Assembly (NCBI GenBank): GCA_052426225.1
Contig: JBNJNM010000006.1
Location: 558,001-622,000 of the forward strand
DNA from: Zancudomyces culisetae HAW-14-8
Lineage: Eukaryota > Fungi > Kickxellomycota
Length of the DNA stretch: 64,000 nt
Reading direction: 5' to 3'
The notes under the pieces are model-generated. The model was not told the DNA's origin. It worked only from the letters and a program-made list of their open reading frames with translations, and did not search any database. A program made the translations under genes and the position numbers. Shown in pieces: positions 57,564 to 64,000 of the stretch (the stretch's first letter is position 1; each line of letters begins with the position of its first letter).

Positions 57564-58295
57564 TTATGGAATATAGGCGGTGGATTTGATTTCAATCAAC
57601 AATTTGGATGGTAATTTTCCAGGAAGTCTACTGACTTCAACTGTGGTTCTAGCTGGACCCGTGGCTGCAGTGAAATATTCATTGTAAACTTTGTTATATC
57701 TTTCAAAATCGTTCATGTTTACGAGGAACACCGTGACGTCGATAAGATTTTCCAAGCCACCACCGAACTGTTCCAAAGCGTACTTGATACTATTTACATA
57801 ATTAGCACCAAATATTTTCTTTAATCAAAGCGTCCAGAAAACAAAAAACCAAACATTCTAAGAGAATGCAATGCTGTGTATTTCCAAGCAAAAAAAAAGA
57901 AAGGAAAAAGTTTCGTCTTACTTTTCTATAACTGTTCGAGTCTGTTCTTCTATATCCAGCTCTAGTGTACCATCGGGTAACTCAGTGACTCCAGCATAGC
58001 TGTTGTGTAAATCAAAAAAAAAAATAATAAATTGTTAAAACCTTGTGAGTTTGGATGGTTGTAAATTATATTTCACATTGCTTAAAGGTGGAAATGGCCC
58101 AAAGGCACAAGTTCGAAACAAAAAAAAAAACAAGATAAATATACCAAAAATCATTTACCTATTGTCTGGTCGGCGTGAGGACAAGCCGCTAACGTATACA
58201 AATGGTCCAACTTTTTTGGCATGAGGATACCCTGCAAGCGGTTGAGCCTTCTCGGTAAGTTGAAGTGATTCCACCTTCAGTTCGGGTAATTGCAT
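57564..58295 (-). CDS. Rid/YjgF-family protein, NbaF-type 2-aminomuconate deaminase. Exons 58295-58159, 57999-57922, 57789-57564
   Basis: Spliced translation [146 protein letters not shown]; SG.SSRRPDN, LVNMNDF and GPARTTV motifs. Confidence 0.88.
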
Positions 58296-58893
58296 TGTGT
58301 TTTTATTTTTTTTGTTGTTGTTGTGAGAATTGCGAATAAACTTGTGAGCGGATGTCGTTTGTTGAAATTATTACTCTATCCTGGTGCTAAGTGGTAACTA
58401 GTATGTTTTTCTCGATGTGATGGGGTATATTTCCGCTTTTTATGTTGTTTGGATACCAAAAATAATTTGCATCAACTAACAACACCAAAAGCGTGGGTGG
58501 AAAAAAGGGGGGAAGGAGGAGCTACAGCTTCATCATGCGATTGGGCAAGACCGGGCGTATTTGAGTATATTGCTGCTTGTTATTCATCTTTAGAAAATGG
58601 GCAAGGGTTGTTCACATCTTTAGCTAGCCATGGGTTTTTGAGGATTTTTAGTGGCTAGCCTGCCAAGTTAATTACTCACAACACAGTTATGGAATAATAC
58701 ATCAAGATTACGTTTATCAATCCTGGGAAAATCGTTGCTTCCAAGCTGAAACGAATTTCGATAGGAATCACAAACCTGGTTTGAAACAGAGAAAGCTAGG
58801 CTTAAGGAGAGCCTTCCTACCCCCTATTCTTTATCTTTTTCTCCCACACTTTTCTTGATCCTTCAAATAATCTATCAGGTTCAGATTTTCTGA

Positions 58894-58920
58894 CCCCCCC
58901 CCCCCCCCCACACACACACA
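58894..58920. repeat. C16 homopolymer followed by a (CA)n microsatellite
   Basis: Read directly from the sequence. Confidence 0.85.
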
Positions 58921-59456
58921 GGTTATCAGAAAGCATTGTATAGTGGGTATATGACGACTTTGATGGTTTATTACAGTCTAAATGATTAAAACCTGATTTT
59001 TGGTACCTAGTGCAACCCATTTCAACACAATCAACAAGTTAATTGATCACTAGGTTAATTATACAATTAGTTAATGTTTTTCGAATGTTTGCTAAAACTC
59101 GGCAACTTAGCTTGATAGCATGTTTAAAATATGATTTCATGTTTAATTTTGCAAAATGAAACATACTAAAATGTTCTAGGTCACGACAAAACTTCAACCA
59201 TACTTTTGTGTATCAGAATCACCACAAGATGCGATCTCCATTTTGGTCCACAACAGCATAATAAATCAATTTTCAACAACAAATAAATATCAGATGCCTT
59301 AATCTTCAAAAAAAAAAGGATTCTGAGTGTAGCTGTGCACTATTGTTCAAAGTTTATTGTAAATGGGGGGGGGGTGAAACAGGTTTACATAGAAAAAAGT
59401 TCATAGCAACAGTAGTAATATCAGTGTGTAAATAAATGCACATAAACATGAGGTAT

Positions 59457-60997
59457 TTAGAAATAGTCACTAGGGTCTAGCCCAAGGAGATGTAAAGCGT
59501 TAAATGCCAAGATGCTCTGCTTATCCTTTTCGCTAAGCCATGTACAGTTTGCAACAAGTTTCCCGGGAACGTCTTCTCCTAGTGGGAATGGATAATCAGA
59601 TCCCAAGACGATGTTTTTTACACCGATTTTTTTGACTAAAAATTCTAGAGTCTCTTCATCATGAACTAGCGAGTCAAAGTATAGTTTTGGCAGATAGCTT
59701 TCAGGATGAGCATTGCAGGAGTGGGCTACTAGATCTGGTCTACATTCATATCCATGGAATATGCGCCCCATTGTTCCCGGGAATGAGCCGCCTCCATGTG
59801 CAAAAACTACCTTCAGATTTGGATGTCTGTCATATACACCACCAAGTATCAATGAACAAATGGAAACTGTGGTTTCGCATGGCTATATATAGATATAAAT
59901 ATTAGTTATTTCCATATCGTATACAAACACTTTGCAAAAAGTGACCCCTGAATAGCACATCAAAATAAAACAAAAAAAATCAAAAGAATGCGGTGACTTT
60001 AAACCACGAAATAGGGGAGCGGAGACGTGGGATATTCTTGACAAATGTTTATAAAAATTGCTAAGCTTACCATTCCAATTAGCCATGGGAACCAGTACTT
60101 GGACATTCTCCCTTCAGAATCCATATCCCATGGATGTATAAATATGGTGGTGTTCAACTCTTCTGCTGCACTCCATATAGGCTCGAATTCAGGAGCATCC
60201 AAGTTCAGGTTATTCACATGTGAGCCTATTTGGAACCCACTCAGTCCCAGTTCCTTCACGCAGCGATGCATTTCGCGAACTGCAAGTTCAGGATCCTGCA
60301 TGGGGATAGTTCCCAATCCTATGAATCTCTTGGGGTTTTCAGAAACACATTGTGCTATGTGATCATTCAAAAACTGTGACACAAAAAGCGCATCCTTTGG
60401 CTTTGCCCAATAAGAGAACATTACTGGTATTGTAGAGATAACCTATTTCAGTTAAACCAAAGAATATTATATAGTTATATAGTGATCTTTCTAGATTCTC
60501 TAGACAAATACTGTGATAGTAAAAAGTAATAATAGAGACTTAGCATGTGATGCTAAAAAGTTGCGGAATAAACCGCACAACGACTTACTTGTACGTCTAC
60601 ACCATCCCTATCACACTCATGAATTCTCTGGGACGAGCGCCAGCAGTTGCAGTCAATTGTTCTAAAATTTCTGCCGTTTTGTATCATATCAGCCTTGTCT
60701 GGGCTCTATAAACATATTCATGCCTTTTTAATAGAGTTGGGGGTAAAGAAATGAAAACATAGTACTAAGGCCATTCAGAAAGCAAGATAAATAGTTGAAT
60801 AACTGAAAACTCATAGGTTTTCACCTCATACTTACGCTTGCATTATCTCTGAGCTTTATCCAGCCGCCATACCCAAACATTTCTTCAAAGTCTGGAATTT
60901 CCCTAGGAAGAATGTGTGTGTGGAAATCTATGACTAGCCTCCTAGCATCACCCGATGCGCTGTTTATTGTGCTCGAATCTTTTTCATCGATTGTCAT
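59457..60997 (-). CDS. ACMSD: 2-amino-3-carboxymuconate-6-semialdehyde decarboxylase. Exons 60997-60836, 60705-60589, 60442-60071, 59882-59457
   Basis: IDFHTHILP (HxH metal site), FGYGGWI, NFRTI..NCW, VQVISTIPVMFSYWAKP.D, RFIGLGTIPMQ.P, QIGSHVN, FIHPWDM, YWFPWLIGMPCET, AHGGGSFP..GRI.HG, GSDYPFPLGE. Confidence 0.96.
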
Positions 60998-63053
60998 TTT
61001 CTATGTTTATCCTTATCGTCTTTTCTTTACCTGCTAATCGTTTAAAGTCACAAAGCTAAATGTAAAATGGAAGATCCTTTCAAAAAGCTATACTAAATAA
61101 TAAGTACTCCTGATGTTATCACTTATTATATGAAGAAGGGATGTTCCTTTTTATTCGCAACTATGTGACTTGTAAGAGGGAGCGTGGGCAAAGTTTTATA
61201 CGAGGCATTATTTCAAAAATAGAAAAAAGCTGGGAGGGGTGTGTCTATTTTTTTTTTGTTACCAATGAATCGGCGTATGCTTTCACAACAACCCAAAAAA
61301 AATAATATGCGCTAAATGCAAAAGTGGTCACAGGAAGATGTGGAGGCTACAAGGCTGGTGTATATCTCAATAAACACATGTTTTTTATTTTTGCTTTGCT
61401 CATATTATACCCATCGGGTTTATCCTAATGATGAAGATGAAAAGAACAGATATGATGTAATTAGATTATGTGATTTTTAGGAAAGGCCAGTAATATGACT
61501 GAGTAGCATAGTTTTTTATTTTTTATTTGCCACGAACAATCATAGAATCTAGCAAGGTCTATTTTGTTTGGTAGTTCATATTTTTTTTCTCACTATTTCA
61601 AATCTAGTCCTTGAATGCATCAAGTTTAGGTAATGCAAGTAAAGGTAATGAGTTAATAGCATGTACGTATTCTGATGATAACAGAACCGCTTATAAGGAC
61701 AACTTGGTTATTCATGTTTGATAGATTTTCTGAGGGAAATCAGGAAAGTTTCTTTTTGAGTATTTGGGCAAGGTAACTACGATCTTTATTTTTTAAAACT
61801 AAAAGGAAAGATGAAATAGAATTGAGTTATGAGTGCTCACAGGCCAAAACAAGCACTGCGTTATCAGTTTGCTGTTTCATAACTTATGTAACCAGTTCCC
61901 ACGGATATTAAGGTGCTGTAACACGAAGATAGATAAATAGAGAGAAGAAGAGGGGGTGGGAAGGGAACATTTGTTTCAACTTTGTAGTTTTACTATGTTT
62001 ATTTCTGGTATTTTCATCTTATTTATTTTTCACAACTATTTGCAGAATGAAAGTGGTACCATCAGATATAAACATATCTATCTAGTTGGATAAATACACG
62101 CAAAAGCAAAAAGCGCTGAATTACAGCTTGACGGTTTATTCGTTGTTGATATCACTTCTTTTTTCAAATGGTTGATAGAAAGTGTGGGAAAAATAATAGC
62201 CCATTGCTTTGGTTAGGGGCTTGTTCTCAAAGCTCACAAACCTAACCTGCCTTGTGAACATTTTTGTTTTTTGGTATTTTTACGGCTAGTTTGTGGGATC
62301 ATCTATATGTGTTGATATCTGTTAAGATTATGAATAAAAGTAAAAAAAAGCAAAAAAAAAAGGTTGATTGAGGGGCTAGTCGAAAATATTGTTATAACAG
62401 TCGTGCATAATGATAGATACGTGAGTAGACACATAAATGTACCTATGCTGGCGTCTATATACCACTGGAGTCATGTTATATGGACACCAACAGCAAAAAC
62501 AAGTGTACTTTTTTTTTCTACAAAATTGGCTTTGCTTGTACTTTTCCATCAAAACAGCAAAAGTTGTTGGTTTTCACTCCTCTTTTCTCACACTATCAAT
62601 CTCCTCCCCTTCACCCCCTTTGGCCAATTTCTGTTATTTACTCGTTAATCAAATTTAGTACTTTTTTATGTTACTTTGACAGTTTCATCATTTTTCAAAT
62701 ATGACAAATTAATCAAAAACATGGAAAAAAACGAAATTGATTATAACAAACCGGTTTCAGCAGTTTCTATTTGGTAGCGCTTGAGGCATCAAATTGTGCA
62801 CGCTGTTTCAGTTACAAATTGTCGAATAAATCCTTAATGACTAAATTCAGCTTCGAGCGAACCCACTAATTGTTATTATTTTCGGTGAAAACTCAAAGCA
62901 TTGATGCATTTTACAGATAAAAAAATATAAGGCCTAGACCCATTGTAACGCACCTGTGTTGAAGAAATAAAAAATAAACACATAAAAGTTGGCAAACAAG
63001 TTGGATGAATTAAAATATCAAAATAACACACAAGAGAGAGAGAAAAAAAAGAG

Positions 63054-64000
63054 ATGACGCAAATCCTGCATGAAAACCTCATACCAGATCCCTTTACTGA
63101 ACAAGTAACAGTAAGAAATTACTTTGATGGTGAATGGCATGAACCCTCCAATGGCCAGTATCTGGATAACTACAACCCAAGTACAGGCAAAGTATACAGC
63201 AAAATCCCAGATTCCTCTGCCGAAGATGTAAGTCGAGCAGTTGCGGCGGCAAAAAAGGCATTTCCAGTGTGGAGCACCACCGACAAGGAGACAAGAGCAA
63301 AGCTCGTTCACAAGCTAGCTGACCTACTTGAGGAAAATTTGGAAGCCTTTGCGCAATACGAAACCATGGACCAAGGAAAAACTCTTACAATGTCCAGAAA
63401 TGTGGATATCGCGCGGGCTGTGTACAACTTTAGATATTTCGCAAATCTCCTGACAGGACAGACAACCGAGCACGTCGGCGAAACCAAATATATGAAGATG
63501 GTTACAGATTCCGCTGGTGCTCCTATAAAGGCTAATGCGCTTAGCTATACCAACAGAACACCTGTGGGTGTTGCAGGTCTCATAAGCCCCTGGAATCTTC
63601 CTTTATATCTGCTCACATGGAAGATCGCACCATGCATCGTTGCTGGAAATACATGTGTCTGTAAGCCAAGTGAATTTACAAGTGTTACTGCTATGATGCT
63701 TACAAGACTGGTTAAGGCAGCAGGTATTCCTGATGGTGTCATAAACATGGTCTTCGGGCTTGGCGCATCCGTTGGAAATAGCATTGTCACACACCCTGAT
63801 GTTCCATTGATCTCTTTCACAGGGGGGACAGTTACAGGAAAGCACATTGCTCGGACCGCAGCCCCATTATTTAAACATATATCTCTAGAACTTGGAGGCA
63901 AAAACCCAGCACTGGTGTTTGCGGATTCAAACTATGACGAGACTTTGACTTCATTGGTCAAGGCTTCATTCTTGAATCAGGGAGAAATTTGCCTGTGCCC
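63054..64000 (+). CDS. ALDH8A1: 2-aminomuconate 6-semialdehyde dehydrogenase (ALDH8A1-like), 5' part; runs off the right edge
   Basis: Open frame from ATG 63054, absent from the ORF track because it has no stop in the window: YNPSTG, DQGKT, DIARAVYNFRYFA, PVGVAGLISPWNLPLYLLTWKIAP, KPSEFTS, SFTGGT, LELGGKNP (Glu), NQGEICLC (Cys). Confidence 0.93.
   Translation, partial: MTQILHENLIPDPFTEQVTVRNYFDGEWHEPSNGQYLDNYNPSTGKVYSKIPDSSAEDVSRAVAAAKKAFPVWSTTDKETRAKLVHKLADLLEENLEAFAQYETMDQGKTLTMSRNVDIARAVYNFRYFANLLTGQTTEHVGETKYMKMVTDSAGAPIKANALSYTNRTPVGVAGLISPWNLPLYLLTWKIAPCIVAGNTCVCKPSEFTSVTAMMLTRLVKAAGIPDGVINMVFGLGASVGNSIVTHPDVPLISFTGGTVTGKHIARTAAPLFKHISLELGGKNPALVFADSNYDETLTSLVKASFLNQGEICLC

Follow-up and report, generated by a model that had tools for sequence, protein, structure and literature searches.

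A three-gene locus of predicted late kynurenine-pathway genes in the Harpellales fungus Zancudomyces culisetae

In Ascomycota, genes for the breakdown of 3-hydroxyanthranilate are gathered in a “3-hydroxyanthranilate catabolic cluster” that comprises 3HAO, ACMSD, AMSDH and, usually, a Rid-family putative 2-aminomuconate deaminase (AMD) (Martins et al. 2021, mSystems, PMC7842363). In the ascomycete clusters, ACMSD and the gene for 3-hydroxyanthranilate dioxygenase (HAAO) are always arranged head-to-head, 550 ± 220 bases apart, and AMD is the sole intronless gene (Sassi et al. 2026, bioRxiv 10.64898/2026.06.05.730449). The same work found that A. flavus AMD deaminates 2-aminomuconate while human RIDA does not, and that animals have ASPDH as a 2-aminomuconate reductase (AMR) in place of AMD (bioRxiv 10.64898/2026.06.05.730449). 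Here, we describe a locus of Zancudomyces culisetae HAW-14-8 in which the genes for an ACMSD, an AMSDH-type aldehyde dehydrogenase (ALDH) and an AMD-type Rid protein adjoin one another. The locus lies at the end of a 64,000-nucleotide stretch of contig JBNJNM010000006.1 (positions 558,001 to 622,000; G000:C6:558001-622000), referred to below as the window, from an assembly of 27 Mb in 25 contigs (GCA_052426225.1). Judging by their sequences, we consider it quite likely that these genes constitute a three-gene metabolic cluster of a Harpellales fungus, acting in consecutive late steps of the kynurenine pathway and probably assembled within Kickxellomycotina/Harpellales.

A preliminary description of this DNA had mentioned a clustered pathway in Aspergillus. 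That precedent is real (PMC7842363; bioRxiv 10.64898/2026.06.05.730449), and any novelty of the present locus therefore lies in the lineage and in how the cluster arose rather than in the concept. The two clusters share ACMSD, AMSDH (of the ALDH8A1 type) and a Rid-family AMD within a few kb, that is, three of the four genes, and the expected product would be the same, 2-oxohex-3-enedioate and ammonia. Unlike the ascomycete cluster, the Harpellales cluster does not include HAAO, which sits on another contig; ACMSD is head-to-head with ALDH over 2056 bases rather than with HAAO; and AMD has two introns whereas ALDH has none, which is the reverse of the ascomycete pattern. Neither of the two papers (PMC7842363; bioRxiv 10.64898/2026.06.05.730449) mentions Harpellales or early-diverging fungi, and a literature search on Harpellales and tryptophan returned nothing relevant. 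A cluster type that is already published is found here in another build and in a remote fungal lineage; the concept is not new. Taken singly, the genes hold nothing unexpected, their Harpellales orthologues being already so named in public databases.

The three enzyme families recur, with their reactions in the same sequence, in the bacterial nbaCDEF, amn and kynurenine operons of Pseudomonas and Burkholderia. Bacterial proteins are also the best solved-structure matches for AMSDH (4i1w) and AMD (6izh), and a bacterial ACMSD structure exists as well (2hbv). The locus described here is not an operon: its genes are eukaryotic and form units of transcription of their own, introns occur, and a divergent promoter is presumed. 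No decarboxylase, hydratase or aldolase genes follow. Compared with the animal pathway, ACMSD and ALDH8A1 are orthologous, at ≈52–54% identity to the amphibian proteins. The two differ in the next step: animals have ASPDH/AMR (bioRxiv 10.64898/2026.06.05.730449), whereas AMD is present in this genome, in which the Pfam model of the ASPDH family, PF01958, gave no match. The kynurenine-pathway genes of animals are not known to be linked.

Identity of the three proteins

Exons were searched one by one. A public 358-residue protein (P0245, named ACMSD, from Z. culisetae) served as the full-length ACMSD, while the full-length AMD queries were the intronless orthologues from Smittium simulii (L005) and S. 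angustum (L007). The exons of ACMSD, an enzyme of the amidohydrolase-2 superfamily (EC 4.1.1.45), taken in order, follow the human enzyme along its length (Table 1). The HxH metal motif is in exon 1, where DFHTH (His26/His28) aligns with DIHSH (His6/His8) of human ACMSD. Arg69, His246, Arg257 and Asp313 align with human Arg47, His224, Arg235 and Asp291, respectively (4igm, 2wm1); from the structural literature, we take Arg47 and Arg235 to be substrate-binding and Asp291 to be a metal ligand. The equivalent of His174 (His196) was recognized by the motif IHPWD alone. Exon 3 scored 178 bits against the human enzyme and 70 bits against the Pseudomonas enzyme. The assignment as ACMSD made in the preliminary description is borne out by this full-length collinearity with the human enzyme, by the aligned catalytic residues and by a position in the fungal ACMSD clade (see below).

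The ALDH covers PF00171 from end to end, and the seven PDB sequences that it matches best (≈1e-113) are all 2-aminomuconate 6-semialdehyde dehydrogenases, 4u3w and 4i1w among them. In the alignment with the Pseudomonas fluorescens enzyme (PfAMSDH, 4i1w), Cys313, Glu279 and Asn181 correspond to the catalytic Cys302, Glu268 and Asn169, and Arg121 and Arg489 correspond to Arg120 and Arg464, the two arginines that hold the substrate carboxylate. The named homologues are ALDH8A1 or 2-aminomuconic semialdehyde dehydrogenases from animals and early-diverging fungi, at 49–53% identity. Against the NCBIfam equivalog models, the protein scored 478 bits for bacterial HpaE, where the cut-off is 638, and 477 bits for hydroxymuconic semialdehyde dehydrogenase, where it is 693; being below both cut-offs, it is classed as neither. 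Its tree position among opisthokont ALDH8A1/AMSDH proteins, rather than outside them, agrees with the earlier reading of this gene as AMSDH. The AMSDH-type proteins of Harpellales are ≈40 residues longer than those of the rest of the family; relative to the bacterial AMSDH structures, the ALDH of the window has extra residues at about 135–160 and 375–405.

For the Rid protein, the best solved structure matched by exon 3 was 6izh, described as “2-aminomuconate deaminase”. The intronless S. angustum orthologue, which is ≈80% identical to exon 3 of the window gene, scored 130.9 bits against 6izh versus 74 bits against the best RidA-type chain. An extra segment, SSRRPDNT...G, is absent from RidA; it is aligned between the S. 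angustum orthologue and 6izh, and exons 1 and 2 of the window gene carry it as SSRRPDN-S-YAGV. The Smittium orthologues are already named “2-aminomuconate deaminase” in UniRef. The protein is thus of the 2-aminomuconate deaminase type within the Rid/YjgF family, as had been proposed, with 6izh as the nearest structure, far ahead of RidA-type proteins. Among the AMD homologues listed, five other Harpellales were represented but Z. culisetae was not, although database entries exist for both the ALDH and the ACMSD of the window. The public annotation of Z. culisetae may lack the three-exon AMD gene or model it wrongly.

The activities of the three proteins are predicted from these relationships. 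ACMSD would form 2-aminomuconate semialdehyde by decarboxylation of 2-amino-3-carboxymuconate semialdehyde (ACMS), the ALDH8A1-type dehydrogenase would oxidize this product to 2-aminomuconate with NAD+, and the AMD-type Rid protein would convert 2-aminomuconate to 2-oxohex-3-enedioate (of which 2-hydroxymuconate and 4-oxalocrotonate are tautomers), releasing ammonia. The substrate would be supplied by IDO, kynureninase and HAAO, which are encoded at unlinked loci. In this scheme, the products of the cluster would compete with the spontaneous cyclisation of ACMS to quinolinate, which an unlinked QPRT would use for NAD synthesis. The benefit of clustering may be that enzymes of unstable, self-cyclising intermediates are inherited and expressed together. 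As far as homology, residues and conserved linkage can tell, the functional reading given in the preliminary description is well supported; the co-regulation, the use of tryptophan as a carbon and nitrogen source and the diversion of ACMS from NAD synthesis that it also proposed remain putative.

Structure and surroundings of the locus

Positions 57564–64000 of the window hold the three adjoining genes, all of them intact, in the order AMD, ACMSD, ALDH. The earlier claim of a minus-strand tandem of ACMSD and the deaminase, with ALDH divergent from ACMSD, is matched by the gene models (Table 1). From 57564 to the window-equivalent position 64628, the trio spans 7.1 kb, which places ACMSD, AMSDH and AMD together within 5–10 kb, as in the cluster defined in Ascomycota. 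ALDH continues for 628 bases past the end of the window; in the genome contig, the full gene is at L002:6054-7628. The AMD gene encodes 146 residues in three exons, both of its introns being GT-AG and in phase 2, and its splice junctions regenerate the residues found in the intronless orthologues (RRPDN-S/T-YAGV and VIE-N-IK). ACMSD encodes 358 residues in four exons separated by GT-AG introns, all in phase 0. Because the four exon translations tile P0245 exactly, the ACMSD gene model is confirmed.

Table 1. Features of the AMD–ACMSD–ALDH locus, in window positions.
Feature	Position	Strand	Remarks
AMD exon 1	58295-58159	-	ATG at 58295; bears AMD-type SSRRPDN segment
AMD exon 2	57999-57922	-	25 whole codons and a split codon at each end; GT-AG borders; collinear with intronless orthologues
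AMD exon 3 with stop	57789-57564	-	PF01042, 3e-17; best structure 6izh, 3.6e-15
AMD–ACMSD spacer	58296-59456	.	Between ACMSD stop and AMD start; presumed AMD promoter
ACMSD exon 1	60997-60836	-	ATG at 60997; human ACMSD residues 2-32, 4.2e-8; P0245 residues 1-54
ACMSD exon 2	60705-60589	-	Human ACMSD residues 36-71, 1.4e-3, Arg47 aligned; P0245 residues 55-93
ACMSD exon 3	60442-60071	-	Human ACMSD (4igm) residues 73-195, 6.5e-52; PF04909; P0245 residues 94-217
ACMSD exon 4 with stop	59882-59457	-	Human ACMSD (2wm1) residues 196-332, 3.5e-42; P0245 residues 218-358
ACMSD/ALDH divergent spacer	60998-63053	.	2056 bases between start codons; AT-rich, 33% GC; presumed bidirectional promoter
ALDH8A1/AMSDH-type gene	63054-64628 (window holds first 947 of 1575 bases, to 64000)	+	Intronless, 524 residues; PF00171, 2.3e-154

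Neither spacer (58296-59456 and 60998-63053) contains an open reading frame with a Pfam match, a tRNA, an Rfam family or a tandem repeat, and the 2-kb ACMSD/ALDH spacer has no second copy elsewhere in the genome. Shared regulation may be exerted from the divergent ACMSD/ALDH spacer. The hexamer TCACAA/TTGTGA occurs in nine copies in the two spacers (2.4–3.5 per kb versus 0.8 per kb in the whole window). It is not taken as evidence of a shared promoter motif, since three other Harpellales loci show no enrichment of it in the corresponding spacers and in the sequence upstream of AMD.

Upstream of AMD are a BAR-PH gene, a cysteine dioxygenase and a mitochondrial carrier. The preliminary description had pointed to the sequence past base 64000 as a place where further pathway genes might be found; none was present, and ALDH is followed instead by Vps23, a GTPase and eIF6. 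Since the flanks on both sides are devoid of pathway genes, the cluster consists of exactly three genes. The other genes of the pathway are dispersed in the genome. The sole HAAO match (C22:119755-120195) has PFK2/FBPase-2 and TAF10 genes on its two sides. IDO is encoded three times, on C12, C10 and C23, and the genes for kynureninase and QPRT map to C8 and C21, respectively. ACMSD is single-copy, and the Rid gene of the cluster is one of three in the genome; the other two are more canonical and are located on different contigs. By a rough estimate that assumes a few thousand genes, the chance of the three named genes being consecutive is of the order of 1e-7.

Linkage in relatives and descent of the genes

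The trio is also adjacent in four other Harpellales assemblies. Including the window, three arrangements were seen (arrowheads give the direction of each gene): <AMD <ACMSD ALDH> in the window, AMD> <ACMSD ALDH> in Smittium simulii (L005), Furculomyces boomerangus (L006) and S. angustum (L007), and AMD> <ALDH ACMSD> in S. culicis (L025). The head-to-head ACMSD/ALDH pair is constant in all five. The left flank differs between the species, and protein identity between the window and these Harpellales is 61–69%. In S. mucronatum, the contigs given for the three proteins have the same length, 53,933. The proposal in the preliminary description that the linkage be sought among relatives was thus answered in two ways: the trio is kept within Harpellales, and it was not found in five other early-diverging fungi. 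In these (Ramicandelaber, Basidiobolus meristosporus, Lobosporangium, Gigaspora and Paraphysoderma), ALDH has neither partner within 10 kb, as confirmed by tblastn. In Calcarisporiella, AMD stands alone and unlinked.

Partial linkages were seen in scattered lineages. In the aphelid Amoeboaphelidium (L023), AMD is head-to-head with an AMSDH-type ALDH that is 48.7% identical to the ALDH of the window. In Ramicandelaber (L024), the 5′ end of ACMSD follows AMD by ≈300 bases, at the edge of an 8.5-kb contig. The two ends of this Ramicandelaber brevisporus contig form a 412-base inverted repeat of 98% identity (L024:226-637 and L024:8134-8545), with an ACMSD 5′ end in each arm, and the AMD–ACMSD adjacency is uncertain for this reason. 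Either ACMSD is present twice there or the repeat was produced by the assembly.

Some further features of these loci were noted. A Vps23/UEV-type gene is found near ALDH in Ramicandelaber (L008:5149-5433), in Furculomyces and in this genome (L002:8281-8973). In Harpellales, ACMSD and AMD may have been added beside ALDH, whose locus would be the older one. Basidiobolus meristosporus has three tandem ALDH8A1-like copies (L009:7661-13902), and two of these are merged in the gene call behind its 875-residue database protein P0002. In Furculomyces boomerangus (L006:7030-8067), the annotation merges a UCR_hinge (QCR6-like) gene with AMD into a 228-residue product. The two are separate genes in S. 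angustum and S. culicis, and the Furculomyces fusion is probably an annotation error.

The phylogenetic trees cover homologues apart from the ascomycete cluster proteins and the AMDs assayed from A. flavus and Burkholderia; among the AMDs, exon 3 alone stands for the window. All fungi fell on one side of a branch with a support of 98 in the ACMSD tree, with Harpellales inside a set of zygomycete lineages and the window protein as sister to those of the other five Harpellales. The ALDH tree places Harpellales in a long-stemmed clade (support 100, with a stem of 0.7 changes per site); its grouping with Metazoa, a nucleariid and a blastoclad is weak, and the bacterial clades lie elsewhere. For AMD, the window falls inside the Harpellales clade with an SH-aLRT support of 95.

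The introns of AMD carry additional information about its descent. Intron 1, in phase 2, interrupts the S/T codon of RRPDN-S/T, and Calcarisporiella, a member of Mucoromycota, has an intron at the same position and in the same phase. Intron 2, likewise in phase 2, interrupts the Asn codon before IK/IE and is common to Calcarisporiella and Amoeboaphelidium. Shared positions and phases of this kind mark AMD as a gene of long standing in the fungal lineage. The lack of introns in the AMD of Smittium, Furculomyces and Ramicandelaber is most simply explained by loss. By these comparisons, all three genes look vertically inherited, as old fungal or opisthokont genes.

Two peculiarities were encountered among the AMD homologues. 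The AMD of Amoeboaphelidium protococcarum has in-frame TAA codons at L023:10187-10189 and L023:10205-10207, where the deposited protein (P0184) has Gln. This fits a non-canonical nuclear code, as already reported for this aphelid. The other is a metagenomic contig of bacterial look (L030:10001-13170), with dense genes and a T9SS-tail protein, on which AMD, tryptophan 2,3-dioxygenase (TDO) and an AMSDH-type ALDH lie in a row, a tightly packed bacterial form of this linkage.

Origin and meaning of the linkage

Several results weigh against a functional cluster. When the four orthologous ACMSD/ALDH spacers were compared, the 7- to 9-mers present in all of them were in no excess over shuffled sequence, and the length of this spacer varies from 483 to 3278 bases across Harpellales. 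No match to 4-oxalocrotonate tautomerase (PF01361) was found in the genome, and the enzyme for the onward step from 2-oxohex-3-enedioate is not within the cluster. The adjacency could be neutral synteny, inherited within one fungal order and devoid of functional or regulatory meaning. The absence of a shared promoter motif and the long, variable spacers would suit such an explanation, as would the synteny of part of the right flank (Vps23 and the GTPase) between this genome and Furculomyces and the occurrence of the full trio in one order only. However, the three genes represent consecutive steps of one pathway, and their contiguity has survived two changes of arrangement, with breakpoints at gene borders inside the trio, as well as turnover of the left flank, at protein identities that have dropped to 61–69%. 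The same pathway is moreover clustered in Ascomycota (PMC7842363) and, in part, in an aphelid. We regard a purely neutral adjacency as improbable, and a metabolic cluster remains the explanation that we prefer.

Where such a cluster came from is a separate matter. Horizontal transfer of AMD, or of the whole trio, from bacteria, where the genes sit in operons, might seem attractive in view of the quick AMD tree, which sets Harpellales beside an unnamed clade and not with other fungal AMDs; one member of that clade is the gene in the bacterial-looking AMD–TDO–ALDH operon (L030), and bacterial AMDs are 55–60% identical to the Harpellales orthologue used as the query. Yet a tree in which the eukaryotic AMDs are kept together has a higher likelihood (by 28.5 log-likelihood units) and is not rejected (approximately unbiased test, p-AU 0.78). 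Both spliceosomal introns of the window AMD are shared with Calcarisporiella and one with Amoeboaphelidium. For ACMSD and ALDH, the proteins with which they group are fungal or opisthokont, and the bacterial clades are separate. A bacterial source is accordingly very hard to credit. A common origin within fungi deserves more weight, though it too seems rather unlikely to us: a single ancestral fungal cluster would have given rise to both the Harpellales trio and the ascomycete cluster, with loss of HAAO from the former and dispersal of the genes in most early-diverging lineages. The partial linkages in Amoeboaphelidium (AMD/ALDH) and Ramicandelaber (AMD, then the 5′ end of ACMSD) are what might be left of such a cluster, and the apparent vertical inheritance of all three genes is compatible with it. 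Against this, the ascomycete head-to-head pair of HAAO and ACMSD (≈550 bases) is absent, HAAO being on another contig; ALDH is unlinked within 10 kb in the five fungi listed above, as is AMD in Calcarisporiella; many independent dispersals would be demanded; and among the 120 best matches of each of the three proteins, only part of which carry names, no protein was named as ascomycete. Vertical inheritance, the shared AMD introns and the four differences from the ascomycete cluster make a separate assembly in Harpellales likely, and we lean mildly towards a cluster put together independently of the HAAO-containing one of ascomycetes. The chances are about even that late tryptophan-catabolic genes have become linked more than once, as ACMSD/AMSDH and AMD in Harpellales, as HAAO/ACMSD in Ascomycota, as AMD/AMSDH in an aphelid and possibly as AMD–ACMSD in Ramicandelaber.

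Published clustering of the post-ACMS steps in fungi has been confined to Ascomycota, and the papers searched say nothing of zygomycete, chytrid or aphelid lineages. The Harpellales cluster and the partial pairs seen elsewhere suggest either repeated assembly or long-kept linkage, in a pathway with unstable intermediates. If the linkage did arise repeatedly, the pathway would be a natural case in which to test whether gene clustering in eukaryotes is driven by unstable or toxic intermediates. By its shared introns, AMD dates back to the common ancestor of fungi and aphelids, which complements the 2026 finding on AMD versus ASPDH; on this reading, AMD would be an ancestral fungal gene and not a late bacterial import. 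Harpellales live in the guts of insect larvae, and Z. culisetae is a gut symbiont of mosquito larvae. We may speculate that the cluster serves the fungus in the larval gut by acting on kynurenine-pathway metabolites taken up from the host.

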